DNA of 64,000 nt from Chrysemys picta bellii. Taxonomy: Eukaryota. The translations under genes were made by a program, and so were the position numbers. Below are positions 39,790 to 62,666 of the stretch, one piece after another; position 1 is the stretch's first letter, and each line of letters opens with the position of its first letter. The DNA is taken from assembly GCF_011386835.1 (NCBI RefSeq), contig NC_088814.1, positions 1,178,001-1,242,000 on the forward strand. The letters run 5' to 3'. The notes under the pieces were generated by a model, which did no database searches, was not told the DNA's origin, and was given only the letters and a program-made list of their open reading frames with translations.

Positions 39790-41991
39790 TCACATGCAGC
39801 GGGCTGCCTGCAAACACTTCTGGGGATGCACGTCCGTCTGCGGGCCGTACAGCTTCTCCGCCCACCTCTCAAAGGCCGTCACCATCTGCTTCACCACCTC
39901 ATCGAAGAACAGGTTGGCCAAGTGAGAATGCAGGATGGACTTGAACTCAAAGGAGACCTGGCAAGGAAACACAGATCTTAACAGGGGGCTGCCCTGGGAT
40001 CTCTTTGCCCGATTGCAGCTGCCCTCGACTTCTTGCAGAGGGGCAGCCTGGCAGAACCGCAGGCCGCAGCGTCACTGGGGTGGCCTGTGTAAAGCATTCA
40101 CTAGCCACACACGGTGACCCCCCCAGGAAAGAAGGACTGTTCTGTGCAGGGCCAAGCCTGCCTCTTCCACCCCCGGCCCAGCCTGCCTCGGGGATTGGCC
40201 CAGACGGGAATACTCACATAGAAGTCTAACGTGCAGGTGTCTGGCTGCCCCGGCAGCCCCGGGCTAAACCGCCACAGCGTCTCCAGGTGGCTGAAGATGC
40301 GGCTGTCGTTGCATACAGCCTGCAGGAGGAAAGGGGGCTCGCGTCAGTTTCACCCCACAAGGCTCTCAGCTGATTTCAATCCACCCACACCCAGGAGTGC
40401 CCAGCAGCCAGTGACACTGAGCCCGGGCTGCTGGAGCCAGTAAGAACCGGGCTCCCTGTTCACACACGAGTTCACATCTGCGTGAGTCTGTGAACGTGGA
40501 ACCGGGCTACACAGGCCGTGTGGTAACAGGCGAGCCCCTAGCCGTAGAGAGGCTGGGGCTGCCAGTTCACTTGGGCAGAGGTTCCTTATCCGGCACCCGT
40601 CCCAAGCACTGACTTATTAGTGTGACGTCCGCCTCTCCTCAGCCCTGATCTGCCTGGAACTGGACCCACACAGCTCAGCACCAGATACAACCCTGGTTTT
40701 GTCTGGCTCCTTGGAGCCCGACTGCTGCCTCAGGGGGGGGAGAGGAGCTGCATCTCACACACAGACGCTTTTCGAGAACGGGGCAGACGGGGGTCACAGC
40801 CACAAGCACGAGGCCTGGGACCCACAGGAACCTCCCAGAATGTCTGGCCCTGGGATCCCCACAGGCCCCTAGGCTCCCTGGTGGCCCCTTACCCGGATCT
40901 GGTGCTGGGGAGTCAGGGAGATTTCAGAGACGTAGCGCTCCACGAGGGGCGCGAAGCCGACCTCCAGCTCTGCCCGCGTGAGCCCTTTGCGGTAGGACAA
41001 GACCTTGGAGCTCTTGCACCACGGCACAAAGAGCTGGTAGCTCTCCACGTTGGCCACCACGTTGTACATCTGCTCCATCGAGTAGCTGGAAGAGAGGGGA
41101 GACAAGCCGCCTGTGAGCGGGTGCCGGGCGGGTGACGCGAGACAGGCAGCACCTGGCGCGGGGGTCATCAGGCTGGGAACTCAGCCACCGACCTGCACCC
41201 TCCCCCCTTCCCTGGGCAACAGGCTCCTGCCACTGCCCTCTGCCCACCGGAGACAACTCCCACTCCCAGCCCCTTGGCCAGGTCCCCCCGGCCGAGCCGC
41301 CGAGACCCCCTTGGAGCCGCTGAACACCCCTGCCCGATGGGCGACTCTGGGCTCCACACTCACCCCAGCACTCGCGCTTCCGCGTACTCCATCCGCTTGC
41401 CACCCAGCAGAGGGGCTGCCAGGTTCAGGAAGGTCCGTGCCGGGGGCTGCAGCACCTGCGTCGGGGTGACGGGAGGTCGCTTGGGGGCCTGTGGCGTGGC
41501 CAGGATCCCACAGGAACTTAAATGCCTGAAACACAGAAGGGCGGTTACAGGGGTGAGCATCAGGGCACAGCCCGGGGGCCGCGCAGCCCCTTCAGCGTGG
41601 AACCCCCCCCACGGACAGCTCAGCCCCATGGGGTCCGGCTGGGCTCAGCCCCGGGGATTCAGATCCACATCCCCCCCGACCCCCAACCCTGGGCCCCAGC
41701 GCAGGACTGGGGCTCTTCCGGCGCCCACGGTGCCCCCGCCGGCTGGGGGGCAGGACACGAGAGGACGGGCCCGGGGGTCCCACCCGAATCCGGACCCAGA
41801 GTTGGAGCCACGTAGGGCGGGCAGGGGCCGCCCCATCCCCGGGGCCCGGGACCAGGCGGCGGCCCCCGCTCCCCCCGGCCCGGTCTCGTCCGGTCCGGTC
41901 CTTACCGAGTCCCGTCCCCGGGGCGCGGGCGGCCCCCAGCTCCCCGCAGCGCCCGCAGGAACGCGGCTCCCCGGCTGCTGCTCCCGGCCAT
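39790..41991 (-). CDS. Coenzyme Q-binding protein COQ10-like (START/SRPBCC fold), mitochondrial, 5 exons, 236 aa; probable third paralog
   Basis: Exons 41991-41906, 41525-41364, 41085-40893, 40319-40218 and 39957-39790 (TGA) total 711 nt with an intact frame. Motifs: [74 protein letters not shown]. The N-terminus is an Arg/Ala-rich presequence-like segment. AATAAA on the - strand at 39488-39493. The family call is secure; A versus B orthology is not, so no symbol is given. Confidence 0.93.
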
Positions 41992-42130
41992 GGCTCGCGG
42001 CTCGGTCCGTCTGCGCCGCCCCTGCCCCGGCCCCGGCCCCGGCTCCCCCGGGGTGGGTCCGCCACGTGCTCCAGCGACATGTGGGGAAACTCCCACGGGG
42101 CGGGGCCGCGGCCGGGACCGCCCGGAGACG
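41740..42130 (-). promoter_or_regulatory. COQ10-like CpG-island promoter/first exon
   Basis: A CpG-dense island encloses the ATG exon and includes GC boxes and a CACGTG at ~42063. Confidence 0.6.
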
Positions 42131-42435
42131 GGCCAGGGGGGGCCCTGGGCAGCTGTATGGGGGGCAGGTCCCAGGATGGGTCTGGGGCCCGGGGGAGCAG
42201 GGTGGGGGGCAGGTTCCAGGATGGGTGTATTGGGGGCGGGTCTGGGGCCCGGGGGAGCAGGGTGGGGGGCAGATCTCAGGATGGGTGTATGGGGGGGGGC
42301 AGGTCTGGGACCCCAGGGAAGCTCTATGGGGGAGCAGGGTGGGGGGCATGTCCCAGGATGGGTATATGGGGGGCGGGTCTGGGGCCCCAGGGAGCAGTGT
42401 GGGGGGCAGGTCCCAGGATGGGTGTGTGGGGCAGG
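42130..42435. repeat. G-rich tandem repeat upstream of COQ10-like
   Basis: Units like GGGGGGCAGGTCCCAGGATGGG(TGTAT..)TCTGGGGCCCGGGGGAGCAGGGT. Confidence 0.85.
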
Positions 42436-42738
42436 TTATGGGCTCACTGGGGCAAGGAGCAGGGACACGTCTCCCTGTTCCCTGGCACCGTCTGGACACA
42501 GCCCTGGGCCCGAGATGGAGCCATGTCCTAGTGCGAGTTCGGGGGTCGCTGAGTGTGTGTGTGTGGGGGGGGGGGAAGGAGCGTGTGAAGACAGGGGGTG
42601 AATTAGAGAGGTAGCTGCCTGCAAACACCAGGGCTCATTTAGGGCTCCAGCGAGACTGGCCCCAGGGAACATCCCCAGCCCCAGGGCACGAGACAGACAA
42701 TTGCTGGCTTTGCAGCCCTGGAACCTAGAGTTCTAGGC

Positions 42739-42965
42739 CAGTGGGTCTCAAACTTTCATAGTGGTGCCCCCTTTCACATCACAAGCCTCTGCGTGTGTGC
42801 GACCCCCCCTTGTACATTAAACACACTTTATTTATATATTTAACACCATTATAAATGCTGGCGGCAAAGCGGGGTTTGGGGTGGAGGGTGACAGCTGACG
42901 ACCCCCCCCATGTAATGACCTCGTGACCCCCTGAGGGGTCCCCACCCCCAGTTTGAGAACCCCTG
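42739..42965. mobile_element. hAT (Charlie-like) MITE
   Basis: TIRs CAGTGGGTCTCAAACT / AGTTTGAGAACCCCTG, with 8-bp flanks TTCTAGGC / GTCTAGGC (7/8 TSD match). Confidence 0.85.
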
Positions 42966-44059
42966 GTCTAGGCAAAACTCCAACCTGACCTACAGGCGGG
43001 CGGCTGGTTTCCCCGCTCTGAGCGAGGGCCGGTTGTGTAACAGACACTTGACAAACCTGGCTTCCGTTGCAAATGACTCACACTCCAAGTATGTTGGCCA
43101 GCCCAAGGGAGCGGGATTGCAAACAGCCAACATATCCAGACCTCCTGGCCCAGCTACTCTGACGCCCTCTCAGTCTGGAATTGAATTTCCTCTTTCCCTC
43201 AGCTAAAAAGTGTCCTTGACTTCCTGCAGCAGACTCAGGCCTAGGGAAGGAAAGTGTCCGCTCACTGCAGTCTGAAAGTGAGTTTTCATGAGGCGTTTCC
43301 ACCAGCTCCAAGGGCTGGAACCTCTCGAGGGACGAGTGACAGCAGCATTGGGAGACGGTCTGAAACCCGCCAGCGCTGTCGCTCTGCCGCCAGCATCAGG
43401 GAATCAACGTTCTCCTTGGTTGGAGGCAGAAGGGACAGGCCCCAGCTGGGCCTGGTTTCTGGGATGGGCTGAAGTTCAGTATCACTCAGCTCTGCTTCCC
43501 CTCTGGGTGTGTCTTGTACCTCACCAAGAGCTCAGGGACAGTAGGGTGGGACCTTTCCTTCATTGACCCTTGGTGACGGACCCACCCTATCCTCAGAGAT
43601 GAAGCTTCTGTGACCAGAACACAGCTTGGGGGAAGAGTGCAATAGGTTTGCGGGAGGAGAAACACCCTGGTCTACTGTAGGGCTGAAAAGAGTGTGAACA
43701 GCAAGCCCTGCTCCCGCCCAGTAAGGAGCAGTCAGGGTTTGTCTACATGGGAAAGTTTGACCGGTTATACCGGTATCGCTAAACCAACAGTCGTTCCAGT
43801 ATAACCCCACATGGACCCTGAGAGTCCACTATCCAAGTAAAAAGAACAGGAGTACTTGTGGCTTTTTCAGGTTAGCTTAAGACCCTTCCTAAATGTCATC
43901 AGCAACGCTGAAAAAAGCCCCTGGTCCACTGAATTTCAGTGGCAACAAGGATGGGGCATGGTGTTACTATACTGTTCCAACTCTCAATACCAAGCTGGGA
44001 GGGGTTGCAACAGGCGCCGACTTCCCCCCTGTTCCGTGGGTGCTCGACGTAGAAAACAT

Positions 44060-44455
44060 GACCTATAAGGGAAGATTGAAAAAAACTGGGTTTGTTTAGT
44101 CTGGAGAAGAGAAGACTGAGAGGGGACTTGATAACAGTTTTCAAGTACATAAAAGGCTGTTACAAGGAGGACGGAGAAGAATTGTTCTTAACCTCTCAGG
44201 ATAGGACAAGAAGCAATGGGCTTAAATTGCAGCAAGGGCAGTTTAGGTCGGACATTAGGAAAAACTTCCTGTCAGGGTGGTTAAGCACTGGAATAAATTG
44301 CCCAGGGAGGTGGTGGAATCTCCATCATTGGGGATTTTTAAGAGCAGGTTGGACAAACACCTGCCAGGGCTGGTCTAGATAATACTCAGTCCTGCCTTGA
44401 GTGCAGGGGACTGGGCTCGATGACCTCTCGAGGTCCCTGCCAGTTCTGTGATCAG
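44060..44455 (+). mobile_element. CR1 LINE 3' end
   Basis: The translation [51 protein letters not shown] is the typical CR1 ORF2 tail. It is followed by a CR1-type 3'UTR (GAGGTCCCTGCCAGTTCTGTGAT). Confidence 0.92.
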
Positions 44456-46426
44456 TTTAAAGTCACACCTTGGCTTAAACCAGTATAACCTTCCTTCCCA
44501 TGTAGACAACCCCCCAGACTCTGAAGGGAGGGGGGGCACTGCTTCCCTCCATTGCTCTTTGGCCAGAGGAATGGGGGAGGGTGGACAGGTCTCCTGGGTT
44601 CTGCCTGGGAGTGGGAATGTTTGTCCCCACACCAAAGAACATACAAGGAGAGATTAGAGGTGCTGCTTCTTATGGGGCATCTTTATTATTTGCACCCACC
44701 GATTCGCTGCTACCCTCTTGGTGGCTGAATGGTCTTTTTGATCCACCCAGGAGACCTCTCCATCCATCCAAGATCTTATTCTGCCATCAGCTTTGCCTTC
44801 CCGTGCCCATCAACCTGCCTCACCCGCTGACCCTATAACACGGGCCTTGCACTAGAGGTGCTAGTGGGAGTAAAGTGAATCTCAAATCATCAGCACCCCC
44901 AAAAGTGGCATGGAATTTAGGTCCCTCTGCCCCGTGCAGTGGTGATAGCTGGTTGAATGAGAGCAGCGCCCCCTGCTGGCCACCTGGCACAACTGCTAGG
45001 TCTAGTTTTTAAAAGTGAATTAAGCGCCTCGGTTACGGAGAGCCGGAGAGAGCAGCCGGGCCGGTTCCGGCACGCGGCTTTGGTGCTGTCTGTTGGGACA
45101 GTCGGGTGGAATCAGCACTCTACTGCAAGGCGCAGAAGGGCAGGTCCTGGGAGGCTAATGAAGGATTCAGAGCTGGCTGGTTAGGGCACCGTACAGACTC
45201 ACCCCTCACAGGGCCAAGCCCAGCATCTACGCCATGTCCAGGGCTGAGAGAGAACCCAGTACATGCTGGGCACGAACTCAGCCTCTGCCGCTTCCAGTCC
45301 ATCGACCCGAGGGGCGTCTACATCACCCCTTCCTCACTGCACCCTGGATCCAGGGAGGAGCGGAGGGCACGGCTGCTTTGCTGCACTAGTGTTGTGCAAT
45401 TTGGATCCGTTTCCCTGCTGCACAAGAGCTCTGCACGGGGGCTTTGTAGCATCCCTATGAACAGCCTTAAGCTAACGTCAGTTGAGGCGCTGAACACACT
45501 AGGCTGGCACTGGCAGTGCTCAGAGACTGGGGAAAAGCCCTCTCGGGTCCCCCTAGTTCAACAGAGCTCGGGCCCGGTGCTGGCCCAGTGCTCAGCACCT
45601 GTGGATGCAGGAGCCTGTGCTCCACGGAGTGACACGAGGGCTCGTGAAGCTCCCATCACGAGCCAGCAGGAGTCTCCCCTACGGCGGGGAGAGCTGCGTT
45701 ACCGTAGACCTGCGGCACAAATGCAGCCTGCTCGGGGACAGGCCCTTGGGCTCGAGCTGAACAGAAGAAACGGGCCTGGCAGAACAATTACCACACAGAG
45801 ACAGACTGCGCAAACTGGACCTTTAACTGGCACATGCCCGCAGGGTACAGCGTCCGCCCAGGTCTGGCAGCCCATGCCACCGCGGCCCATGCACTGAGAA
45901 AGGGGGACAGTCCAGGCGATACTGATCATACAAGGGGGGTGACGGCGCTCATGTCCCCGCTCCATACAGTGTAGCCCAAAGATGTTTAGGGTGGCAAATG
46001 GAGCTGGGCCTGGGCCTGGGACGTGCTGTGGGGCAGTGTTCTCTGGCTCCTGGGAGACTGCGGCCTCAGGGGGTGCAGGGAACATCAGTCACTACCTTCC
46101 TGGCTTGTGCCTCTCACTGCCCTTTGAGCCCACAGCAGGGGGCTGCCTCTTGGTCAGGGCCTTTAGCGACAGTAAAGCAGGATGCCTCTGCCCCCAGCCC
46201 CACCCCCTTGATACCAGACAAGCCATTTTAACCACCCAGCTGAGACCTGAACTGCGCCCGGCTGACTGACGATGTGCGATGCTCGAACACGGTGTGAGAT
46301 AGAGTGGGGTCAAGAGCGCAGGCCCTCAGCCCCTGGCAGCAGGGCCCAGCAGTGCTGGGATTCCCAGTCTGGCTGTGCAGGAAGATGAGACGGGAGTGAT
46401 GGGAAAAACCACCAGGTCCCAAGACT

Positions 46427-49400
46427 CTAGTCTTGGCCGATGCGCTGCTGCAGGAGGGCCCAGGCCTTCTCCACCTGCCAGAACAAACGTGGGACAGCAA
46501 GTCAGGGTTCAGAAGCAAAAAAGGGCACCAACTGCAGTTGTGCCAGGGCGGAGATGGGCACAGCCTGCTAGAGCACTGGCGCAGGGGCAGGCGTGAACTC
46601 CACTTACAGTGCAGTGCGCACAAAGCCCCGCAACCTTTCACTCCTTCCAGGCTGTGTTTAGGACTCATAACCCAGGCGGGGGGCGGATCTGCCAGGGGTG
46701 GCTGCAGCACAGACAGGACTTGGGGGTTCTCACTGGCCACCCACTAACCCCTGATTCCGCTGAGCTAATCAGCAATTGGGCATCTACCAGAATGCGCTGC
46801 GTTCCACGGAGACGACCCTCATCCCGGGAAGGAAAGAGCCAGCAGCCATCGCTCCTCCATAGGGAGAGGGACACGGAAGATCTCTGGCTCCGCATCTGAG
46901 CCAGCTGTAGGGACCAGATATTGCGTAAGCCCCGTTCCACTAGAGCGGAACAACGCTCTCACCCGATCTGAGCATAACCCGGCGAGCAGTGGCTTGTCCG
47001 AGGCCCTACGGGTAGCCCAGGCAGGACTCCTATCTAACCACGTGGTATCTAAGTCCTCGGCTGAAGCCGCAGGGCAGGTAGGGCTTGCATCTCTGCCAGA
47101 GGGATGGACCCCAACGGCTCCCCTCTGTCCCTGCTGGCCTGTCCTAGGCAAGACAGCAAGCACTCCTGGATCCCCAGCCGGGGGCCCCTGGGCTCTCACC
47201 TGCTTCTGGGTAGCCTCCGGCTCCCAGAGGGTGCACAGCACAACATGGGACTGCTTCACCCTCTGGGCGTTGCTCAACTGGCTTTGCAGCCTGTTGCGAG
47301 CAGCCTCTTCACTCAGCCCATCTCTGGCCACAATGCGGCGCAGGGCCTGAAAAGACCAAGAGGGGACGTTCACTTCCAGGCAGGCACACCAGGAGCCAAT
47401 GGCTGGGGCAGGGAGTCACCTACCTCCTTCTCCGGGACGCTGGCCATCCAGACCTCATGGACCATATCTGTCCAGCCGGCCTCCAGCAGCACGGCGACAT
47501 CCAGCACACACACCACTTTCCCTGTGGAACGAGGCCATTCCCCATGAGTGCTTGGGAACCACAAGCGCCCAATTCCCTGGGGCTGCTCCTACGAGCCAAT
47601 CCAAGCAAGCCTGAAATGTCACGCGTTGCTGCAAACGGGCAGCGCAGACACCTTACCGCGGAGCAAGAGAACCCCGTGCAGAAGAGAAAGCAGCATGCCC
47701 CAGACTGTTTCCAGCCTAGCACGTGCACACAGGCTGGGCCGGGCCACGGAAGCGTCTCCAGGAAAATGCCTGTGAGACTAGCAATGCTCCAGGGGCGTTC
47801 CATTTCCCCAGGGAGCTAGAGGAATTCTCTCCCGGGGAAACTCACTGCTGGGATTTGGAATTACAAATGCACTCATGGCCTTTTCTGGAGGGGGGGGGGG
47901 GGGCAGAGTATCCAACCATTTCATGCAAAGGCTCCCAATCCAAGTCTGGCACTTACCCAACTGCAGGAAGATGCAGTGGACGAGCTCCCAGTAAAGCACA
48001 GAAAGGACTGAGCTGGGAAAACCTACCAGGTGCAGACGGGGGCTTAGGACAGCAGTTACCCAGGGTCCCTGGGCCGCGCGGTGGTAACGGGATGATAAGT
48101 CCCAGTCCCCTTTGGGTTCAGAGGGGAAGATCACGCTCACCCTGGTCTGCTGCTTCATTCAGCTGCCTCTTTGTCATCTTAGCAATCACCGGCCACACGA
48201 TGTCCGTGAGACACTTTAACCGCTCCTAGCAAGGGCACATGGCTGGACATCAGTTATTTGCTTTCATACGATCAAGTGACAGATTTCCTGGGTAACCCCG
48301 CAAAGGGAGTCACCCACCAGCATCCCTACTGCCTCCTCCCCCAAGGGCCCCACGTTTCCAGCTTGCTAGGTTAGCCCCCGATGGAAAGTGGTGATACTGC
48401 CCTAGGAAGCAAGGTGCTCGCCTCCTCTTTCCTGCCCTGCAGGGAACAGATTCTCCGAGCGACTCCATCAGTAGTAGCCTGATCTCAGTCACTGCAAGAG
48501 CTCAGCGGAGATGATCTATCACCATGTAACAGAGGAAGCTGGGGAAGTGGGAGTCGCAGTCCAGGCCCCAGCAGAATGGTGCCCACACAGGGCTCCCACT
48601 CAGACAAGCCAAGGAACGACGAGGTCGTGGAGACTGAACTCCCCTTCCACACCTCAGCTGCAGCTCAAAATCCAGGGTTGCCAGTCTCCCACTAGTGAAA
48701 GGAGGAGCACAGGAGCGGACCAGTGGTCCGTGTTCCCATCACCGTGTTGGTTAACTCTGCTCAGGGAAACCCCAGGACACACAGGGTCAATCGGCCTGGG
48801 CCACATGTACGCCAGCACTTAGACCAACATTGGGAGATGTCGCCCTGGAAATGGGTCTCCCCTGGTAGGTGGCTTGGGCTGCGGAGGGGATCCGGGGATC
48901 CAGCACTGCCAACACCTTCACACTAGAGAAAAAACAGCCGGTGGGAGCCGAGGGAGCAGCAGAAGCACAGAGGGGAAGATACCGAAGCCTTGGCAGCAGT
49001 GGGGACAGGAGAGGTGAAATACTGACACGGAGATGGGCGGGTTTTACCTGGTTTCCAAACACTTTGGCCCCCAGGATTTTCCTGTTAATTGTCCCATCTT
49101 CATTCAAAATGTCTGGAAGACAAAGAGGAACAGTAAAAAAAAGGACTCAGTTCAGATCCTCATGGGAGAAGGGCTCCCAGGGAAGCAGGAGCTGCTGAGT
49201 GGGGTCTCTGCCTGGCATTCCCTTAAAGGGGTCTGCAAACAAACCCCGGGCTTCTTTAAAGTGTAGAGAGGGCAGGAAAGGGCTTTTTCCTTCACGTTGG
49301 GAACATTAGGAATGTCAAGTCCAGCCTTTCCTGCTCTAGCTGGAGAACTTGTTGGCGGGCACAGCTATGGAGTGGGAGGTCTCCTGCCTTACCAGAAATG

Positions 49401-52400
49401 TCCTTTCTCCCTACGGTTCATTAGGCAGTGGAATTCAACAGGAGTTAAAAACAGCTCAGTGATCTTCCTAAGAATCTCGCCCCCCTCCACTGCTCAGCTT
49501 TCACATATCACGTCGCCAGGTCTCCAAGACCTGAATTTCTTATGGAAAAGACAACAGATTTTTGGACAACCTTACAGGCTCGTCTCTAAGTCCCTTTCTC
49601 CTCACCTTCAGGCAACTTTTAAAGCAGAAGGGTGGCCAACATGCTCATGGCACAGAGGCAAGGCCTAAAAATGCTACAGACCAACATGCTAGGTTTCGTC
49701 TTAATGTAAGCACCTTCTGCTTGGTTCACACCAGAGCAGTGGTTCTCAACCAGGGGTACAAGTCCCCCTGGGGATACACACAGGTCGTCCAGGAGATACA
49801 TCCACTCATCTAGAGATTTGCCTAGTTTTACAACAGGCTACGTAAAAAGCACTAGTGAAGTCAGTGCAACTTAAAATTTCACAGGCAGTGATTTGTTTAT
49901 ACTGCTCTGTTTACTAGACACTGAAATGTACGTACAATATTTCAATTCCCATTGATCTGTTTGATAATTATATGGTAAACGAGAGTCAGCCGTTTGTCAG
50001 TACTAGTGAGCTGTGACACGGCTGTATTTGGATGTCTGATTTTGTAAGTTTTTAAGTGAGGTGATTCTTGGGGGTCCCGAAGACAAATCAGACTCTTGAA
50101 AGGGTACAGGAGTCTGGAAAGGGTGAGTGCCACTGACCTGGAGCACTGTATGCTGGGCCCTGTGTACTAAGGATGAGGGCACCTGCAGCTGGCACCATTT
50201 TCTGCCAATCACGAACAGCCTTTATGCTACCACAACTCTGGTTACAACACAGTCCTTCGATCAGCGAAGCTTGGCTCCCCGTGTCTTACAGGGCCCTGCC
50301 CAGCAGTTCAGGCTTCCAAACCAACCTATGTCCAAGAGTTCTCTGCCAGTAGCACCCTCTGGAACCCAAAGAGCTGTACGTTTGGTTCCGAGACACCAGC
50401 TAGGGACAGTCAGCCAACAGACACACGCTAGGTAGTCTGGCGTTTTGCTGCTTCAGTGGCCACGAATATCCAGTATAGGGAAGCACAAGTTAGCGAGTAT
50501 CCTGGGTCCAGGGCAAATAATCCTGGATGCTGTTTACAGCCAAAGATGTCAGTGGATAAGAAAACTACCTCCAGCACTTCACTTTCAGACACTAGCTCTC
50601 CACAGCCCTGTGAGCTGGGGAAGTGCAGGGGACGCGGACTGCTCCCAAACCAAAGGAGGGAGAGATTTGGAACTCAGAAGTTACTAAGATGATTAGGGGG
50701 GAGGGATAGCTCAGTGGTTTGAGCATCGGCCTGCTAAACCCAGGGTTGTGCGTTCAATCCTTGAGGGGGCCATTTAGGGATCTGGGGCAAAAATCTGTCT
50801 GGGGATTGGTCCTGCTTTGAGAAAGAGGTTGGACTAGATGACCTCCTGAGGTCCCTTCCAACCCTGAGATTCTAGGAGTCTATGATGTGTCCCCGTCACC
50901 CTTGCTGCCCCGGCATTCTATGCAGAATATGCTCGCTGTACCTTCTCCGAACTCCTCTGCCACCTGCTCATATGCAGGGCCACCTGGGGCATAGGCTTCG
51001 TGGCCCAGTTTGTCAACATCGATGAGGAAAGCTCCGAGGCGTTCCAAGTGTCTGGCAATGGAACTTTTCCCACTTCCAGTTCCTCCAGTCAGACCGATCA
51101 CATAGGGACGAGAAGGCTGGGCCGGGCCTTTCTACACAAAGAAGAGTTACAGCGTCAGAAGATTCCAAAGCTACTCAGCGCTGGTGGGGGCAGGAAGGGC
51201 TGGGGAGAAGAGGCCCTGATCGTGAATCCCCACGAGCTCTGAGGATGGATGTGAAAGCTGATGCAAGCAGACAGCTCCTCCCGGGGACTGTGAGTAGAGA
51301 CATGGTCTGGTCTTGGTATGTTCCATGGATGCCCCTGAGAGGGAGACCCCGGCACACCCCAGTCTCCACCACACCAGGCTGCCACACCTCCCCCCAGACC
51401 CGCTCAACGTCCAGCTGCACTTCTCCCTGTGCTTAGTTATGGTCACAAGATCCAAACTAAGCCCAGGAACGTCACCGTCAACCTCCTTCTGGCATCAGTC
51501 CAGGAGGAGGATGCAGTTACAGGGCCCGGGGCCAGCTGACTCCAGCAACGGGCCCTGTCCAGGCCTCTCTGCTCAGCGCTCCCTTGTGTCGTCTCTATGT
51601 CCCCACTCTCATCGCCGCCCTTGTTATTTGACCCTGTTGTCTTGGTGTCACCCATTGTTGTTTCTGGCCCCCACTCACTGAGGTGGAGTAGACCAGCATC
51701 TCTCCCCAGGGCTAGAAGCCACACAAAACCCTACAGGCCGGAGGTTGCTTGGCAAACGGACGGGAGTGCCGGCTGCAGAGCCTCCAGTTACTGTGCCTTC
51801 CTACCTGTGGCGGCTGCAGCAGCGTTCCAAGCAGCCTCTGCCGGATGCTGGAGGAGCTGATCTTTTCCTCTTCGTTCTCTCCGTGCCTGAGATCTTTCAC
51901 CAGCAGGATCTCGTGGAGGGCCAGCTCGGAGAGCCCCTGCAAACAGAATGTGCAGCACAGCGTGGTCAGAGGGTGGGGAGCCACCAGCAGCCCTTCAGTC
52001 AGACCGGCCCCCCAGCAGAGTCACAGTGAAGGCAGCATCTTCACACCAAGCTCTGGAGGCCCCCTGCAATCAGCCGGCCTGTGGGCAGTTCTGCAAGGAG
52101 GCTGGAGGTTGCTGCCTCCCACGATTAGTCCCCACCTGCCTGCGACTGGGCAGTGCTACAGGCCGCTGCTGGGCAAGGACTGGGGTGACAGAAGGGGACT
52201 CTGGAGTCAGGAGGGAAAGCAGCCGCCAGAGAAGGGGAGGGTCCCAAGGAATCAGGAGCCTCTTTCTACCTACAGGACACAGCTCCCCTACTATCCTTTG
52301 GGGCCAGGCCAACGAGTAACTGCCTGGGCCCAGGAGAGAGCTCCCCTGGGGCAGGCTCTTCCAGAATTGTCCATTAAGGGGATCCATGCACTGGGCACCA

Positions 52401-54975
52401 GCTGCTGTTGCAGACAGAAATCTCCTGCTGGGTCCAGGGCCCATCTGATGGGGCTGGTGGTTCCTATACGCGACAGTGGACAGAGAAACAGCCTCAACAG
52501 GGACTGCTGAGTTCCCAGGTGCGTCACTGGGGTGCTCTTGCTCAACCAGTGAGAGGAGATGACGGGAGGAAAGGGTCCCCCTTGGGTAGCTTCCCCCCAC
52601 TGCTCCAGAGGGGGGTATGACTGGAGGGGCAGGGCTTTACACCTCGTGACACGAGCCACAGATCGGGGGAGGTTTCTGCAGAAGGCCAACCCCAATGAAG
52701 AGGTACAGCCTTAAGGGGCAGGGTCCCCGCCATGGAGGGGCCATCTCTGTGGAGCTCAGAGGAGGACAAAACCCAATAAACGGTTTGTCCCATTTATCCC
52801 TTGCACGCTCCATGCCCAGCTCTCTGAGTTTTCATTCTTTCCCTCCCTTCCCAACACACTTAGGAAGGACAACCAGGCCCCGAGGGGCATTGGCAGAGTT
52901 GAGGTGGGGGGGTGGGGAGGAAGCCCAGGCCTGGAACAGCAGGGGGAGTGCAGGTCAGGACTGCTGCTCACGGGAAGAGTCAAACTGGGGAGCTTGTACA
53001 GCACCTGCTGCCCTATGCCTGGCTCTGGCGAGAACTCCCAGGCCCCCACTTTCAATGCCACCGATTTCGCCCCCCAATTAAGGAATGAATAGCAGGAGGG
53101 GGTGTATTCCGCTAGGTCAGCTTTAAAGGCATTACATTTTCAAGTCTCTTCTTGTTCACGGCCACCCCTCCCTTGCGGGTCTCCTCACTGACTACTATAC
53201 ACTCCAGGTCAGGGTCCGTTATCGATGGGCCATAGGGGTCTACCAGAGGCACAATGTCATAACGCAAAGAGGGCTTCACGTCCACCAGGAACTCACAGAG
53301 CTTCTCCACTCGTTGCTCGTATGGTTGGATCAGCTCCTTCAGCGTCTTATCTGGAAGGGACAAGAAACAGGGAGGAAGCCACAGTGTGCAGCTCCCCGCA
53401 CCCAGAGCTAGCAGCAAATAGTGACAGTTAAAGGAGGGGCTAACAGAGATGCTACAAAGGCTTTAGCAACCTCTGGAATGACCTGAGCCCTCACTTCCCG
53501 AGTGCCAAAGGGCATTGCGCTCCCCAGGTTTCTGGGTGTTGGAGAAAGGAGTCACTCTGGCAAGACGACAATGCTGCAATTCCTTGGGTTTGCTATCAGA
53601 GGAGCATCATCTCTGCACAAAGCAGCAGCGAGCACAGACAAGTGACTCAGCCTTGGGCTGCTTGGCAGGGAATATTTAACTCCAAGGGCAGCACATCTGT
53701 CATGAAAACACAGACGGCAAAACAGGCTCAGGGGACAGGAGCAAGATACCAATCACTATGACAGCCCTCCCCGCCGGGACATTGAGACAGCTCCTCTTTT
53801 CCCCGGAGATGCCATTGCACCTTGGCTCAGGCAGTGGGAGTAGTCTGGTGATTCTCACTTATCAGCTCTGGCCAGTTTCCAGTTCTCAGGCGCAAACCCA
53901 AGGCTACTGCCGGGGAAGGGTGCGCGATACAAACCACCGAAAGAAGGTTTACAAAATCTCCTCCTAAAAGCCAACAAGCCTAACCGCTGGGCCTAAATGA
54001 CTCTCCTGTCTCGTTAATAAATGCTGCTTCTCTATTACCGCTGTGCCCACATGGTTCAAATGTGCTTTACATCTCCACTGATGTGAAACCTCCTCTCCCC
54101 CTTCACCGCAATGAACACACTCCACCTTTAAACATCCTAGATACTTGGACAGCACACCCATTGCAGAGTCCAAGCTGGCCCAAGGGAAACACTAGAGAGC
54201 GATCGAAACGGCTCCCTTCACTGCCATCGGGAGCGAAAGGAGTGACGGCCCGAGGAGAACGAGCGTAACTGGGGTTTTGCTTCCTGGTTTGGGACGAGGA
54301 TTCTCACTCACTCTCCAGAAGATCCTTGTCAGAGACACCAACCAGAAGCCGGTTCTCAGCCAGCAGGCAGCAGGCACTCAGAAGGATCTTGTGAGCATTA
54401 TGGAGTCTGTCGAAAGTGCCCCCTACAACGACATCGCTGTAACTCCGCAGAGCCCCGCCATCCAAGCCTGGCTCCCATGGGGGCAGCTCGCTTGGGTCCA
54501 TCATGGGCTCGTAGTCTGGGTACAGCAACACAGAGATAAGATTGGGCCTGCAACTGTAACAGCTGGTGGCATAACGCTCCAGGCGCTGCTTGACTGGGTT
54601 GTACTGGCCCCCATCACTGGTCTGAAAGTCGGTCAGGATCACCTCGGGCGGGTGGGAGAGGTTCTGCACCGAGGACAGCGACTGCTGCGTCAGGCTCTGG
54701 TTGCGGATGTTTGTCAGCAGGACCCGCACGTCCAGGTGGCTGTGGGTGTCAGCGTCCGCATACAGCTTGTTGATGAGGCTATAGACCTCAGGTGTGGCTG
54801 GCACGTAGGTGGACCCGGGCTGCGAAGAGCCGGTCAAGCTGAGGCCCGGCTGTAGGTGAATGTAGAGCGTATCCTCCACGATCCGGGAGGCCGAGGCCAG
54901 GATGGGCACAAGGCGCAGAGACAGGGCAGAGAGCGGGGCCGTGAGCACCAGCAGGCCTGAGCGGAAGACAGACAT
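46427..54975 (-). CDS. COASY: Bifunctional coenzyme A synthase (PPAT + dephospho-CoA kinase), 9 coding exons, 547 aa
   Basis: Coding exons 54975-54312, 53350-53136, 51936-51805, 51131-50942, 49112-49048, 48225-48141, 47521-47424, 47346-47200 and 46474-46427 (TAG) total 1644 nt. Start [12 protein letters not shown]; PPAT motif [12 protein letters not shown]; DPCK P-loop [11 protein letters not shown]; end [15 protein letters not shown]. Confidence 0.97.
49737..50135. mobile_element. Older hAT-like non-autonomous element, COASY intron
   Basis: It starts CAGTGGTTCTCAACCAGGGG and ends ..GAGTGCCACTG; the TSD is only partly conserved. Confidence 0.6.
50696..50886 (+). mobile_element. tRNA-derived SINE with a CR1-derived 3' tail (tortoise polIII/SINE type)
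   Basis: The head has A/B boxes (TAGCTCAGTGG..GTTCAATCC) and the tail reads GGACTAGATGACCTCCTGAGGTCCCTTCCAACCCTGAGATTCTA..CTATGA. Confidence 0.88.
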
Positions 54976-55084
54976 GGTACCTGGAACAGACACGCAGGAG
55001 CAAGGGAGGGGGTTACGCCGGTGACAGCAAAGCGTGAGCTCTAGTAACATGGCCTCTGAGCTTCACTCGCCCCCAGCCTCACCA

Positions 55085-56500
55085 CCCAGCCCCCCGCCTC
55101 ACTGCCCTGTCCTCACCACCCCCCGCCACACTGCCCCCAGCCTCCCTCCCCACCCCACTGCCCCCCATCCCCAGCACCCCCTGCCCTCACCACCCCCCGC
55201 CACACTGCTCCCAGCCCCCCATCCCCACCACACTGCCTCGCCCCCCATCCCCATCCCCCCCTGCCCTCACCACCCCCTGCCACACTGCTCCCAGCCCCCC
55301 TCCCCTGCCATCCCCATCCCCCCCTGCCCTCACCACCCCCCGCCACACTGCCCCCAGCCCCCCTCCCCACCCCACTGCCCCCCATCCCCAGCACCCCCTG
55401 CCCTCACCACCCCCCGCCACACTGCCCCCAGCCCCCATCCCCTGCCATCCCCATCCCCCCCTGCCCTCACCACCCCCTGCCACACTGCTCCCAGCCCCCC
55501 TCCCCTGCCATCCCCATCCCCCCCTGCCCTCACCACCCCCCGCCACACTGCCCCCAGCCCCCCTCCCCACCCCACTGCCCCCCATCCCCATCCCCCCCTG
55601 CCCTCACCACCCCCCGCCACACTGCCCCCAGCCCCCCTCCCCACCCCACTGCCCCCCATCCCCAGCACCTCCTGCCCTCACCACCCCCACCCCACTGCTC
55701 CCAGCCCCCCCATCCCCACCACACTGCCCCCCATCCCCAGCACCCCCTGCCCTCACCACCCTCTGCTGCACTGCTCCCAGCCCCCCTCCCCCAGCCCCCT
55801 GCCCCCATTCCCAGCACCCCCTGCCCTCACCACCCTCTGCCACACTGCTCCCAGCCCCCCTCCCCTGACATCCCCATCCCCCCCTGCCCTCACCACCCCC
55901 CGCCACACTGCCCCCAGCCCCCCTCCCACCCCACTGCCCCCCATCCCCATCCCCCCCTGCCCTCACCACCCCCCGCCACACTGCCCCCAGCCCCCCTCCC
56001 CACCCCACTGCCCCCCATCCCCAGCACCTCCTGCCCTCACCACCCCCACCCCACTGCTCCCAGCCCCCCCATCCCCACCACACTGCCCCCCATCCCAGCA
56101 CCCCCTGCCCTCACCACCTTCTGCCACAGTGCTCCCAGCCCGCTCCCCCACCACACTGCCCCGCCCCCCCATCCCCATCACTCCGTCCTCACCACCCCAT
56201 CCCCCCCTGCCCTCACCACCTTCTGCCACACTGCCCCCAGCCCCCCCTCCCACCCCACTGCCCCCCATCCCTAGCACCTCCTGCCCTCACCACCCCCACC
56301 CCACTGCTCCCAGCCCCCCCATCCCACCACACTGCCCCGCCCCCCCAGCCCCAGCACCCCCTGCCCTCACCACCCCCCGCCACACTGCTCCCAGCCCCCC
56401 TCCCACCCCACTGCCCCCCATCCCCAGCCCCCCCTGCCCTCACCACCCCCCGCCACACTGCTCCCAGCCCCTCTCCCCACTGCTCCCGTCCCCAGCCCCA
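55085..56500. repeat. ~1.4-kb C-rich minisatellite (G-rich on the COASY sense strand) filling COASY intron 1
   Basis: The core CTGCCCTCACCACCCCCCGCCACACTGCCCCCAGCC recurs at irregular ~50-70-bp spacing. It produces the spurious 568-aa Pro-rich ORF. Confidence 0.95.
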
Positions 56501-57110
56501 CGCACCCGAACCAGCCCCGGCGGCGCTGCCAGCCCGGGGGCGTGGGGGGGGGGGGGAGCCCGCGGGGGATGCTGGGTAACGCCCATACCCCAGCGGGGGC
56601 GGGGCCCGCCGTCACTCACCGAGCGGCCGGGCCAGGGGCCGCCTCTCGCCGCCGCTCCGCGCCTGACCCGGAAGCGCTCCCCGCTGCCCGCCGGAAGTGT
56701 GTCATCGCCATTTTTTAAATCTCCGTTTAAATTTCAATAACAACTTTATCGACTTTGCGGGCGACCTCTGACCCCGGACTCTCGCGAGAGGGCGCGTGGA
56801 AGCGGGCTCACGAGGGAGAGTTTGGGGCGGGGCTCCTGGAGGGGGCGGGGCTAATGAGCGAGGTGGGGAGGGGCTCATAGAGGGGGCGGGGCTAAGGGAG
56901 AGGTTGGGGCGGGGCTCATGGAGGGGGCGCTAAAGAGATAGGTGGGGCGGGGCACTTGGGGGCGGGGCTAAGGAGAGAGGTGGGGGCGGGAATCCTGGAG
57001 GGGGAGGGGCTAAGGGGAGAGGTGGGGCAGAGCTCCTGTAGGGGGCGGGACTACGGGGAGAAGTGGGCGGGGCTCCTGGAGGGGGCGGAGCTAAGGGGAG
57101 AGGTGCCCCC
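56500..57110 (-). promoter_or_regulatory. COASY CpG-island promoter with GC-box array
   Basis: Two CCGGAAG ETS sites (~56667, ~56691), YY1-type CGCCATTTT (~56707), palindromic TCTCGCGAGA (56780-56789) and about ten GGGCGG boxes in a tandem array at 56822-57100. Confidence 0.7.
56620..56760 (-). other. COASY: Probable non-coding first exon of COASY
   Basis: Donor CG|GTGAGT at 56620/56619 lies within a CpG island. The ATG exon begins with the acceptor TTCCAG|GTACCATG at 54980. The exon's 5' boundary is approximate. Confidence 0.7.
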
Positions 57111-58897
57111 TCATGTCACTAAGCATCACCTGGGGCGACTCTGCCGAGTGGGATGGGGGTCCTGGGACCCATTTAGGGCTCTGAGCGACTTATAGACTCT
57201 GGGCTGGGAGCTGGCGGTTGGGGCCCGTGGTCCCTGCTGATCCACTGCAGCTCACCAACCTGCTCGTGCTCGGCTCAGACTGATCACAACTAACTGGAAA
57301 CCCAGAGGGGGACACGGAGCCTCAGCCGAGCTGCCTTTCAGAGACACCCCCCCAGCCACGGGAAAAGAGAGGGGGTCTTGAGCCCTTGAGCCCTGCTCAG
57401 GAACCCCAGTTTGCTATAGAACCCATCAAACAGACAAGAAATAAACACCCTCTACAACAAAGGAACCCTAAACCCACTCCAAGAGAGTCTGACCCCGTCC
57501 TTCCCCCATTAAACCCCAGTTTTTAGCCATTTAGATGTCACAGCATTGCTGGTAACCTAGAGGCTCACCCGTTTCGTTGCTTATGGAGCCAAACTCATTG
57601 CACACGCGAGCGGCTCCTTGCATTTCTCCATTTCCCCCAACCTCCCCTTCTCCTCCCTTCAGGGACCCCCTGCAATCTCTCCCCACCCCCTCCCTCGTAC
57701 CCGGGGGTCTGGGTGCCCTCCCTTCCCTCATTGCCCTTCTGATAATTGGAGTGGCTCTTCACGCCTCCCTCCTCCCATGCCCCTCATACCAGGGTTCCCT
57801 TTCCCACCTGCCAGGGATGCTGTTGTGCACCCCCATTCCTCCCACTATTCTTATTTATTTTCTTTCTCCTCTGCTAACCAAATGCCAGGGGCTCCATGAC
57901 CCCACATTTCTCCCCTTTGGGTTCCCCCCCCCCCAGTTTTTCCCAAAATCAACAGGGTTCTGCTCATCAATGCTTAGAACATTCCCTGAACCTTCGGAAT
58001 TGATCAGACTTGGTATTCAAAAGTTATCGCATTACAGCCAGAGAAAGGCCCTTGAGTCACTTCACGAGGCCAATAAGCCTCTTGGATAAGGGACTATGTT
58101 GTCTGGGGCTTCCAGCAAACCTATGCAGCACCGACAGCAGCTTTTCCATCCAACTGGAGTTGTGAGCATTAAGCTTCTCTGCAGAACAGGCCAGTAGTGT
58201 TGGAGAATGGACTCCGGGATGGGACAGGATGGTAGGGTGACACTGAGGGAATAGGTTCTGTGACAGACGAAGCTTCTCCATCTCTAACTACTGTGTCCCT
58301 GCCTAGAGATGAGGCTCTGGGAACAGCCTTTCCCACCTGGCCTCAGGCCTTTCTGAAGCAGCTTCTTTCCACACTTAGGGCAGCTTTCTTAATTCTTCAG
58401 AATACATTTCTTCTCCCTGCATGACCCGGGCCAGTCCTTGGTACCAGCAGGGACACCCTACATCCTTATCTCACTAAGGAAACAAAACCAAAATACGCCA
58501 GAAACCTCTTCTGCAGCACCAGGTCGCATCCTTGCTGTGACAGGCCGCAGGACTGTGCCCTGCTCAGGTGCATGGGCCTGGGGAATTCCTGACTGCAGGT
58601 GCCTGGGACTGGGTGGGGGTTGCTATTTTGATTGTCCAGGGCAGGGGGGTGAGATCAAGGCAGCAGAAGCTGTTTGGCAGCGGGAGGGGGAAGAAACCTG
58701 CCCAGGGATGGTGCTCTCTGGGGCTTTGGGCACAATCTGGGCTAAATCCTTTCATGACAGCAGCAAAGACACTAAAGAAACCTACTTTTAAAAGGTCCAG
58801 ACAAAATTTCTGAGTTCAAGAGCTGAAGCAGGAGCTCCAGGTGTCCCCCAGAAAAAACGGGGAGGCAGGTAGTGACCAGATACTATGGTGATGGGTG

Positions 58898-59371
58898 TGT
58901 GACGAACTGGGACTGTTCTTGCTGGGGTGTGTGAATGCTGACAGGGGAGTGTGACTAGGATGGTCTGCATCGGGGGATGGGAGCCGGCCCAAGGGAACAT
59001 ACCTGAGCTTGTAACATGAGAACCCAGGAGGGGGTTGGAGGTCAGATGACTCCGGGGCCCGGGGAAACTGAACAAAGGCTGTGGGAGGGGTCGCTGAAGG
59101 CAGAGGGCTGGAAGCAGGCTGGAAGGAGGCTGGAGAGATGGCTGGGAGGCAGAGATGGCTCTGACCCCCCAAGGGGGGTGGGCTGGCATGCCCTGGGACC
59201 CCAAGCTGGACCTAACTGAGGGGGGCCCTGTTGTCTGTGCCTGCAAGACCTGTCTTGGACTGTATTCCTGTCATCCAAATAAACCTTCTGCTTTACTGGC
59301 TGGCTGAGAGTCATGGTGAATCGCAGGAAGCCGGGGGTGCAGGGCCCTGAGTCCCCCAATACTCCGTGACA
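58898..59371 (+). mobile_element. Solo LTR (474 bp)
   Basis: Termini TGTGACG...CGTGACA, an internal AATAAA (~59278) and a 5-bp TSD GGGTG on both sides. Confidence 0.88.
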
Positions 59372-59796
59372 GGGTGCACTATAAACAATAGGTAGATTAG
59401 ACAATTATGGTGACGGTGGCTACTCCATCGTTAAGGATGCAGCAGTGTTCTCATTATATAATATTAATGCTTTCCTCACTCCCGGGAGGTACTCAGGGAC
59501 AGTGGCTACGTCTTGTCTTTTCTTTTCAACACATCATTTTGAATTCCCCTGGTTGTATGACAGACAGTGCAAATCCTTCTTGCCGACTCCTGGACTGCTC
59601 TGGGGGAAGGAGCAGGTATCTCACGTGCGGAGACACAGCCAAATGGCAGCTCGTCTGCTGCTGGTATTCACAAAGAAGGTGACATGACAAGCATTAGAGA
59701 GTAGAATTTATTGAATCCAACCCTACAGCGCAGTACTGCAGGCAGAGCCCAGCAAATATAAAAAGGTCACTCGTGTGTGTGTGCGTGCGTGCCCGT

Positions 59797-60002
59797 NNNN
59801 NNNNNNNNNNNNNNNNNNNNNNNNNNNNNNNNNNNNNNNNNNNNNNNNNNNNNNNNNNNNNNNNNNNNNNNNNNNNNNNNNNNNNNNNNNNNNNNNNNNN
59901 NNNNNNNNNNNNNNNNNNNNNNNNNNNNNNNNNNNNNNNNNNNNNNNNNNNNNNNNNNNNNNNNNNNNNNNNNNNNNNNNNNNNNNNNNNNNNNNNNNNN
60001 NN
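59797..60002. other. Assembly gap (N run), next to a (GT)n/(GCGT)n microsatellite
   Basis: A run of N bases. Confidence 1.
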
Positions 60003-60175
60003 CAGTGCATCACTGTGAAGTACTCAGAGGCAGAAGCGATCGTATTGCCAAGACTCCACCTACGGGAAACGGGAACGGACGAAGGTGGAATCAGTCAGCG
60101 CGAGACTCCGGAAGGCAGAATGCTTGTAACAGAGAGTTCCTGTACATACTGGAGCAGAGCATTGTCCCCTCTAGC

Positions 60176-60372
60176 CAGGGCCGGCTCCAGGCACCAGCTT
60201 AACAAGCAGGTGCTTGGGGCGGCCAAGGGAGAGGGGCGGCACCTGCGGCAATTTGGGGGCGGCAGGTCCCTCGCTCCCTCTAGGAGCAAAGGACCTGCCG
60301 CTGAACTGCCGCCGTCGATCGCGGCTTTTTTTTTTTTTTGGGGGGGTGGCAGAAATGCTGGAGCCGGCCCTG
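60176..60372. mobile_element. hAT MITE, young insertion
   Basis: Perfect 15-bp TIRs CAGGGCCGGCTCCAG / CTGGAGCCGGCCCTG and a perfect 8-bp TSD CCTCTAGC (60168-60175 and 60373-60380). Confidence 0.93.
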
Positions 60373-61120
60373 CCTCTAGCCTGGAATCCCGCTTCCTGCC
60401 GCACCGGCGCCGACCCTCAGGCCCATAGAGCCCGTTATTCCCATCGGCTCCAGCATCCTGCCTCCTGGTGTGCAGCCCAGAACTTACACGCCTCTATTCC
60501 AGGCTCCTCTTCCAGCAACGGCTTATGCCTGTTAGCTCACAGCGGCATCCAACCCCCACAATGCACCTGGTCAATCATGAAAATTGTCTGGAATTTTGCA
60601 TATTTCGTTTCTTATAGAACAATCACCAGGACAAGGCTGGTGTGGTGCCTGGGCCTGCCCTCCCTTGCACGGTCGAACTCGAGGGTACCAGGTATACTGC
60701 AGGTGCTTGGAAAGCAATGCAGAGGTGGGGGCCGACGCCTGTCACAGAGCAGGGCTCGAGCAGTCACCATGTGATGGCTGGGAAGCAAACAGTGGAACAA
60801 CTCTGTCTAGTTCTTGCGTGGGGTTTTCCCCCTGAGCACTCTTTGTAGACATTGCGGAGTGAAGCTTCACCCCCCCCCCGGGTCACCCCCCCATCAGAGG
60901 GACAAGGCCACACTGCTAACAATAAACCCGCTGGCTCCTGGGTTCCAGCCCCATTTCCGCTCCACTAGCCCACGCTGCCTCAACTCGGACAAATGCATTA
61001 CAGAGGGGACAAAACTACCTCCCCCCCGGGGCCCCCTGCGTCGTCTGTCTTCTGAGTGCCAAGCCAGCCGGTCCCGAGCAAAGACAAGGAAAGGGAGCAA
61101 TTACCTGCCATCAGCTCTTC

Positions 61121-62666
61121 CTAGTCATCTACCCCCCTCTCGGGGGCCATCAGCTCTCGTCCTTCCTGGTCCCCCTGGTTGCGATCCCTCGTGGACAGCA
61201 CGAAGGCCGGCGCAGCCTTCTCGACGTGGATCCCTCTGCTGCCGAAGTAGCTCTGCAGGGCACTTAGGAACTGTGGGGGAAACCAGGCCTGAGTCAGCGG
61301 GTGCATTAACCACCTGGGTCCTGGTAAGTGCTGGAGCCTGCGCCACAGGGCCTGCTGGGAGCTGCTCTCAGGCCTGGGGCGAAGGGGCTGGACCCCAAGC
61401 TCACCACCTGGTGCACGAGGCGGAACAGCTCCTGGTTCTGCAAGGCTGCTGGGCGTGAGCAACTCAGGCCCACAAACCCACTTCCCGGGCCTTAGCCTCG
61501 CTGGCGCTCACAGCCCCCTGGAACAGCCAGCCCCAGGGCTCCGGTACCTCTGCCCCTCGGCGTACGTGGGGCTGCGCGGCCCGGAGGCTTCCGCTTGCTC
61601 CTTCTCTGTCCAGCAGCGGCAGCCGGGGAGAACGTTCCCAAGGGGCAGCAGCTCTGGGCTTGAGGTGTCATCTGGGGGGGTCTGTTCTCATTCAGTCTGA
61701 AGGGGCTGGCCCGTTCCGATCCCGGGGCACCCGCCTCACCCGCTTTGTCTGGCTGAGAGCCAGGCGGACGGGACGCTTAGGGCTGTGCTGAGCTCAGAGC
61801 GCTCTCACCGTAGGGCGTGGGCACGGGCCCCCGGCCGCCTCACAAGGGGACCCTGCAGGGAGCAGCAGACGGGCTCCTTGCGGAGTCAGGCTGAGGAGCT
61901 GTATCTGATCCCAGCGTGAGGGCGACAGGCCACAGCCTTGCCCTCGTGTCTCGTACAGACACACGTGTTAGCCACGTGACCCTTTGCTTTTAGGCCCCCA
62001 TTGAGCCTGGACTCCCCGGGAGGGGGCTTTGCCTGCTCTCCCCCAGACAATGCCTCCCGCAGACCAGGAGCCGGGCTGGCCCTGCAGGACCCACCGTGGC
62101 ATGAGTCACCATGGCGAGAGCGAATTCATCTGGCACCGGTATTGTGGTTCATTAGTGAGGCCCTAATGGGCACTTGAAATGAAGCCTCCTGTACAGCACG
62201 CGGCTCCAGAGATGGCAGAGAAAGCCCAGAGGCCCCTCTCAAGGGCTTGGCTAATGTAAACTCAGCCCAGAGGTATTTCGCTGTCTCCCCACTTCCTTTG
62301 ATCCCAGCCGCCCCCTCCCCAAGCCTGTGTTATGGAAAAGAAAGAGACTCTCCCCCCATATAATAGCTACAAGGGAGACGCGATCAGTTATTCATCAAAA
62401 GCCGTTCCACACCCCCGCCTTGGGGGTAGCGAGAGCCGCTTCCAGCCCCGCTCAGCTCCCGCGTCGTGGGAATGCCATGTGCCAACAGCCTCAGCCCCCC
62501 GATCTAGGAGAGAGACCAGCCCCCCAGCCCCCCAGCTCACCAGCTCTCTGTTCTGCGGCAGGTCCAGCTGGCTCCATCTCTCACGCTGCAGGGATCTGTT
62601 CTGAACCCAGCCCTGCACCAGCAGGGACAGGAGACCCAGGAAGGTGACTTGAAGCATCAGGTTCAT
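61121..62666 (-). CDS. C2orf66-like small secreted protein, 2 coding exons, 91 aa
   Basis: Exon 62666-62541 encodes MNLMLQVTFLGLLSLLVQGWVQNRSLQRERWSQLDLPQNREL, followed by donor GTGAGC. Exon 61270-61121 follows acceptor TTTCCCCCACAG and encodes FLSALQSYFGSRGIHVEKAAPAFVLSTRDRNQGDQEGRELMAPERGVDD*. The junction is phase 0. There is a hydrophobic signal peptide. The spliced core resembles human C2orf66 as recalled ([30 protein letters not shown]). Confidence 0.8.

Follow-up and report, generated by a model that had tools for sequence, protein, structure and literature searches.

Two intact genes beside COASY in the turtle Chrysemys picta bellii: an ancient third COQ10 copy and a DUF4720 gene as candidate ohnologs on the HOXB paralogon

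In human, COQ10B and C2orf66 both map to 2q33.1, COQ10A maps to 12q13.3, and COASY and MLX map to 17q21.2, on the chromosomes carrying HOXD, HOXC and HOXB, respectively. In the turtle Chrysemys picta bellii, a stretch of 64,000 nucleotides (assembly GCF_011386835.1, contig NC_088814.1, positions 1,178,001 to 1,242,000; hereafter called the window) carries COASY flanked by a COQ10-like gene on one side and, on the other, by a small gene that its orthologs assign to DUF4720 (Pfam PF15846), presumably the family to which human C2orf66 belongs. The locus raises the question of whether these two genes are ohnologs that were retained on the HOXB paralogon after the two rounds of vertebrate genome duplication (2R) and were later lost in mammals. 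For the locus as a whole, the explanation that we favour, with moderate confidence, is that both are extra intact genes, one being a third COQ10 ohnolog and the other a probable C2orf66 ohnolog on the HOXB paralogon.

Reading frames on both strands placed the COQ10-like gene, COASY and the DUF4720 gene on the minus strand of the window. A first-pass annotation of the locus had described the COQ10-like and the C2orf66-like gene as lying about 20 kb apart, flanking COASY on the same strand. This description was borne out: both frames are intact, the splice sites are canonical, and the distance from the COQ10 start to the DUF4720 stop is 19.1 kb. Coordinates of all features are compiled in Table 1.

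The COQ10-like gene (39790-41991) consists of five coding exons with an uninterrupted frame of 708 nt (236 codons) and GT-AG borders at all four introns. Exon 3 alone scored well above the gathering cut-off (23.4 bits) of Pfam family PF03364 (Polyketide_cyc). The window exons were matched one by one; as a proxy for the encoded protein in trees we used P0171, a RefSeq-type emydid model of 236 aa (Trachemys cluster) named 'COQ10 homolog B, mitochondrial-like'. Over its full length, P0171 matched PF03364 with 92.4 bits (profile positions 2-126 of 126), and its residues 78-219 matched chain A of 1T17, a solved COQ10-type START protein, with an E value of 6e-11. By eye, the N-terminus of the COQ10-like protein is rich in Arg and Ala. 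The window gene has the same Pfam domain as COQ10A, COQ10B, yeast Coq10p and bacterial CC1736 (PDB 1T17). With COQ10A and COQ10B it further has in common an N-terminal extension ahead of the domain and a START domain whose coding sequence is distributed over three exons (in the window, exons 3, 4 and 5 of five), and in the best-conserved exon it is about 55-60% identical to them. As with the DUF4720 product described below, the molecular function is a prediction: the third COQ10 protein, with its START/SRPBCC domain, is most likely a mitochondrial coenzyme-Q-binding protein like COQ10A and COQ10B.

Table 1. Coordinates of the features of the window that are discussed in the text (positions are those of the window; + plus strand, - minus strand,. 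no strand)
Feature	Coordinates	Strand	Details
COQ10 exon 1	41906..41991	-	ATG at 41991, start context gccATGG, donor GTAAGG; 100% identity to P0171 residues 1-29
COQ10 exon 2	41364..41525	-	acceptor ttctgtgtttcag, donor GTGAGT; 94.5% identity to P0171 residues 29-83
COQ10 exon 3, START/SRPBCC domain begins	40893..41085	-	PF03364, 55.7 bits; donor GTAAGG; 100% identity to P0171 residues 84-147
COQ10 exon 4	40218..40319	-	acceptor tcctcctgcag, donor GTGAGT; matches P0171 residues 142-183
COQ10 exon 5	39790..39957	-	coding 39793-39957, stop TGA 39790-39792; acceptor tttccttgccag; 100% identity to P0171 residues 182-236
DUF4720 exon 1	62541..62666	-	donor GTGAGC; 93% identity to turtle gene models; alternative upstream ATG at 62717
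DUF4720 exon 2	61121..61270	-	coding 61124-61270, stop TAG 61121-61123; pyrimidine tract and acceptor cccccacag; aligns with P0001 and P0002
COASY (bifunctional CoA synthase) coding exons	46819..55050	-	open reading frames match CTP_transf_like and CoaE, and match COASY of the Rhea, Xenopus and Podarcis loci
MLX exons, gene downstream of the COQ10 paralog	24497..25693	-	translations of open reading frames by eye; tblastn matches to HLH genes beside COQ10 in Rhea and Xenopus
Assembly gap (N), the only N run, between the DUF4720 gene and COASY	59797..60002	.	position in the sequence; intergenic
C-rich minisatellite, units of about 74, 137 and 359 bp	55105..56480	.	directly upstream of the COASY coding start

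Relatives of the COQ10-like protein were collected in two ways. An exhaustive profile search with the window COQ10 exon gave 1119 hits at E values up to 0.001, the best 150 of which were considered, and a word search with the full-length turtle ortholog gave 91 named proteins. The latter include turtles, tuatara, alligator, lizards, snakes, ratites and several neognath birds, as well as caecilians, frogs, coelacanth, bichir, many teleosts (some under the name si:ch73-141c7.1) and invertebrates. All representatives of the exhaustive search that are of the same type as the turtle gene (C-type) were closest to reptile, bird or fish members, and the doubtful ones proved to be waterfowl. As anchors, COQ10A sequences from cattle, cats and salmonids and COQ10B sequences from tree shrew, shrew, deer, kakapo and teleosts were taken from cluster look-ups. 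One tree was calculated for 49 proteins with IQ-TREE under LG+C20 and a second with FastTree from 139 rows.

In the IQ-TREE tree, COQ10A (support 100/96) and COQ10B (89/82) are sisters (100/97), and the C-type proteins form a third clade, separate from both, with P0171 inside its turtle branch. The branch that sets the third clade apart has a support of 62/95, or of 98 in the FastTree tree. It comprises teleosts, bichir, coelacanth, amphibians, reptiles and birds, and its internal order roughly follows the species tree from teleosts to birds, with the deepest nodes unsettled in IQ-TREE. In these searches of annotated proteins, no mammal turned up in the 91 named hits, nor did any among the C-type representatives. 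Ray-finned fishes and tetrapods are represented in all three clades, and the COQ10 duplications therefore predate the bony vertebrates. As judged from the protein tree, the interpretation of the window gene as an ancient vertebrate duplicate, older than the bony-vertebrate ancestor, is well supported; a duplication within reptiles, which would have spoken against the proposal of the first-pass annotation, is not what the tree gave, the third clade spanning fishes to birds. The window gene differs from COQ10A and COQ10B both in belonging to its own vertebrate clade outside the A+B pair and in its place, which is beside COASY and MLX and not at the A or B loci.

The position of the COQ10 copy was compared with that in other lineages, a comparison for which the first-pass annotation had called. 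The order found was HSD17B1-COASY-COQ10-MLX-PSMC3IP in Rhea pennata, COASY-COQ10-MLX in Xenopus laevis, COASY-COQ10-CISD3 in Podarcis, and HSD17B1-COQ10, followed by ACLY on the other strand, in grass carp. The copy is thus found beside COASY, MLX or HSD17B1 in all four, and its position is conserved from teleosts to turtles. The COASY and MLX open reading frames of the window, used in tblastn as a positive control, confirmed the neighbours in Rhea, Xenopus and Podarcis. The loci of bichir, Spea and Alligator sinensis contained no COASY or MLX within 10 kb; they are uninformative and were not counted as negative evidence. A third COQ10 gene that arose before the bony-vertebrate ancestor would have stayed beside HSD17B1, COASY and MLX since then.

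The DUF4720 gene (61121-62666) has two exons with an intact frame and canonical splice sites, and would encode a protein of about 91 residues. Exon 1 opens with a hydrophobic, signal-peptide-like stretch, which follows a conserved Met in all four lineages in which the gene was compared, and the product is a predicted small secreted protein. A word search with the exon-1 open reading frame retrieved two turtle gene models, from Natator depressus and Platysternon, to which the window exons are 86-93% identical. These models matched Pfam DUF4720 with 38.7 and 37.0 bits, respectively (cut-off 27). The window exons, scanned apart, covered contiguous stretches of the profile, 9-37 with 12.3 bits and 38-67 with 15.3 bits, each as a partial score next to the gathering score of 27. 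A profile search recovered further orthologs in Alligator mississippiensis (36.6 bits) and a skink (26.0 bits). Small size and a hydrophobic N-terminus are features in common with C2orf66 of human and c16h2orf66 of zebrafish, the human protein presumably being a member of PF15846. Unlike C2orf66, which lies at GTF3C3-PGAP1, the turtle gene is situated between HSD17B1 and COASY.

The two Natator haplotypes carry the DUF4720 gene on the COASY strand, at a distance of 4.6-5.3 kb upstream of COASY. The order is HSD17B1-DUF4720-COASY in Alligator mississippiensis and DUF4720-COASY in the skink Lerista. Common to all four lineages are a 42-codon exon 1, a phase-0 intron with GT-AG borders and, where the exons meet, a short core motif. 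Because the gene occupies the same slot in alligator and skink, it dates back at least to the ancestor shared by turtles, crocodilians and squamates. At this locus, then, neither gene is confined to turtles; such a confinement would have undone the proposal of the first-pass annotation: the COQ10 copy is present in Rhea, Xenopus, Podarcis and grass carp, and the DUF4720 gene in alligator and skink.

Further evidence on origin comes from the map. The STAT1/4, STAT2/6 and STAT3/5 clusters adjoin the COQ10B, COQ10A and COASY-MLX regions at human 2q32, 12q13 and 17q21, and the usual relationship of the Hox clusters is ((HoxC,HoxD),(HoxA,HoxB)). When compared with Hox-linked 2R paralogons such as that of the STAT clusters, the COQ10 family would show one member per Hox chromosome, with the HOXC and HOXD copies closest to each other; it differs in that the member of the HOXB chromosome survives, among annotated proteins, only outside mammals. 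The topology ((A,B),C) of the COQ10 tree mirrors that of the Hox clusters. Tree, position and map together suggest that the third COQ10 gene is most likely the HOXB-paralogon ohnolog of COQ10A and COQ10B, lost in mammals, and that the DUF4720 gene is probably the HOXB-paralogon ohnolog of C2orf66. We infer in this way the connection with the two rounds of genome duplication, and likewise the age of the DUF4720 duplication and the loss of that copy in mammals. The first-pass annotation had proposed that the COQ10-C2orf66 linkage predates 2R. Of this proposal the COQ10 part stands, in that the duplication is older than the bony vertebrates, while the DUF4720 copy is dated only to the ancestor of turtles, crocodilians and squamates, and an origin before 2R would have to be deduced. 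That both extra genes are 2R ohnologs, and that their linkage goes back to before 2R, is a suggestion that we make tentatively; it draws on generally known map positions and on a positional argument, not on dated duplications in both families.

Several results weigh against the interpretation of both genes as 2R ohnologs, and are given here with the alternatives on which they bear. Foremost among these alternatives is that the DUF4720 gene is a later small-scale duplicate of C2orf66 that arose on the amniote or sauropsid stem and came to lie next to COASY by chance. The gene was seen only in reptiles, namely in turtles, alligator and skink, and both the word search with the exon-1 open reading frame and the subsequent two-turtle profile retrieved only reptile copies at an E value of 10 or better. 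A hidden Markov model of the family, run on six-frame translations, detected no DUF4720 gene in the Rhea locus, with its HSD17B1-COASY interval of about 480 bp, nor in the HSD17B1-COQ10 interval of grass carp; both loci cover the relevant intervals. The protein evolves fast (omega 0.45-0.9), which may also be why it resembles the Pfam model only weakly, and the turtle copy is too divergent from other database proteins for a word search. The amphibian and bichir loci, however, stop short of the interval upstream of COASY and say nothing about absence there. Moreover, the intron has been kept, so the copy is not a retrocopy. A 2R origin is favoured by the consideration that a chance landing no more than about 20 kb from the COQ10B paralog, on the matching Hox paralogon of the human map, is very improbable. 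We consider a late duplication of C2orf66 rather unlikely. In at least one bird the DUF4720 gene has been lost.

Evidence on the age of the wider family comes from other vertebrates. Published descriptions of C2orf66 go no further than a small, uncharacterised protein whose expression is low and restricted (PMC11323535), and zebrafish has an annotated homolog, c16h2orf66 ('chromosome 16 C2orf66 homolog'; PMC11403715). The C2orf66 family is at least as old as the bony vertebrates, given this annotated zebrafish homolog. Assignment of c16h2orf66 to a paralogon would bear on the history of the family; zebrafish chromosome 16 is presumably not where the neighbours of coq10b or coasy lie.

A second alternative concerns COQ10, whose third clade might be older than the vertebrates, that is, a bilaterian or even earlier duplicate that was lost in all sampled invertebrates, and not a 2R ohnolog. 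When rooted with sponge, the best tree unites invertebrates and A+B and leaves the third clade outside (90/40), a placement that would allow such an older origin. In the FastTree tree the near-root clade consists of green algae, and sequences from green algae and sponge join close to the third clade. The COQ10 clades were sampled without cartilaginous fishes or lampreys. A grouping of the third clade with COQ10B, at a cost of 11.5 log-likelihood units, was not formally rejected either (p-AU 0.17). On the other hand, the sponge branch is very long (1.67) and the rooting weak, and monophyly of the vertebrate A, B and C copies was not rejected, its cost being just 0.55 units (p-AU 0.445). No invertebrate member of the third clade occurred in the best 150 of the 1119 hits or among the 91 named hits, and the human counterpart of the block that houses the third gene is on a Hox paralogon. 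We judge a pre-vertebrate origin to be improbable, and retain the interpretation of the third COQ10 gene as an ohnolog of COQ10A and COQ10B.

It is highly improbable that one or both genes are unexpressed relics with intact-looking frames, as the omega of roughly 0.6-0.9 for DUF4720 relative to another turtle (0.58-0.92 for window versus Natator, on about 14-19 changes) and its near absence from annotations (5.8 billion proteins yielded four models and one chimera) might indicate. Three exons of the COQ10 copy are 100% identical to the related emydid RefSeq model, and over more than 400 million years this copy has retained 55-70% identity and every splice site. In the DUF4720 gene, neutral decay would not have left the frame, signal-peptide-like start, intron phase and core motif in place in four lineages that split more than 250 million years ago. 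Nei-Gojobori omega in the deep pairs of DUF4720 was 0.45-0.65.

The third COQ10 gene is already annotated in many genomes under '-like' names. Models named 'coenzyme Q-binding protein COQ10 homolog B, mitochondrial-like' in RefSeq or Ensembl (turtles, crocodilians, lizards, birds, amphibians) and the teleost models 'COQ10 homolog, mitochondrial' or si:ch73-141c7.1 belong to the same orthogroup as the window gene. The '-like' names imply an offshoot of COQ10B, whereas the best tree does not put the clade with B. In the literature, no paper was found that describes the copy as a distinct third paralog. Model species among fishes, frogs, reptiles and birds have three COQ10 genes, not two, and in zebrafish or Xenopus the third copy, which has no agreed name, could compensate for a knock-out of coq10a or coq10b. 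For the uncharacterised C2orf66 family, the DUF4720 gene provides a second, independently evolving member whose short conserved core may serve as a handle on function; no paper naming DUF4720 was found. If both genes are indeed 2R ohnologs, the reptile DUF4720 gene would be a second, hardly annotated member of the C2orf66 family, coding for a secreted peptide-like factor lost in mammals and birds. With the two genes the HOXB paralogon also gains markers, and they are an example of lineage-specific loss of ohnologs. Since such loss is common, the finding refines the existing picture without changing it and will surprise the specialist little.

Several database records for orthologs of the two genes carry wrong names (P0002, P0003 and P0034). 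The COQ10 paralog of Platysternon is called 'homeobox protein HMX2-like', and its DUF4720 protein 'EF-hand calcium-binding domain-containing protein 7' (EFCAB7). A third-clade member in duck is named 'Coenzyme A synthase', which fits the adjacency of COQ10 and COASY. The metaclust model P0289 is a chimera that combines HSD17B1 exons with DUF4720 exon 2, possibly by read-through or mis-annotation; it fits an HSD17B1-DUF4720 adjacency in some turtle. The deposited alligator DUF4720 model (L008 10001-13423) ends in a different, non-conserved last exon and skips the conserved exon 2 at L008 11674-11805. In grass carp (L004 19457-22478), the COQ10 paralog stands tail-to-tail with ACLY with no COASY between them, and the block has been rearranged in this species. 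A weak tblastn hit directly downstream of the bichir COQ10 gene was dismissed as a chance match, as it lies in a frame without an open reading frame.

Along the window, the genes follow each other in the order RETREG3 and PSMC3IP (both presumed, plus strand), MLX (minus strand), a long minisatellite, the COQ10-like gene, COASY and the small gene at about 61-62.7 kb. The RETREG3 and PSMC3IP exons were named from translations of their open reading frames by eye, and Pfam scans of the presumed RETREG3, PSMC3IP and MLX reading frames gave no match at an E value of 0.01 or better. We take this order to be that of the human 17q21.2 block (RETREG3, PSMC3IP, MLX, COASY) with two additions. The window would then be the turtle counterpart of that block, with HSD17B1 lying beyond its end and with two extra intact genes.

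In the direction of transcription, the assembly gap follows the DUF4720 stop at a distance of 1.1 kb and precedes the COASY start by about 5 kb; neither an exon nor a reading frame crosses it. Its flanks match, in order and orientation, two gap-free contigs of the flatback sea turtle, Natator depressus (window 60179..60003 corresponds to L001 12363..12527, and window 59787..59372 to L001 12573..12990). The scaffold join across the gap is regarded as sound, the flanks being collinear with the gap-free Natator contigs. At L001 124-5008, 5 kb upstream of the DUF4720 gene, one Natator haplotype has an open reading frame of 1602 residues for a retroelement polyprotein (SCAN, RT, RNase H, integrase); the genes called in the other haplotype do not include it.

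Two repeats adjoin coding starts in the window. The C-rich minisatellite upstream of COASY gives rise to a spurious, proline-rich open reading frame of 568 aa on the plus strand and to a strong negative GC skew. Directly upstream of COQ10 exon 1 lies a G-rich tandem repeat with units of 60-77 bp (42178-42431), within a CpG-rich stretch with 67% GC.

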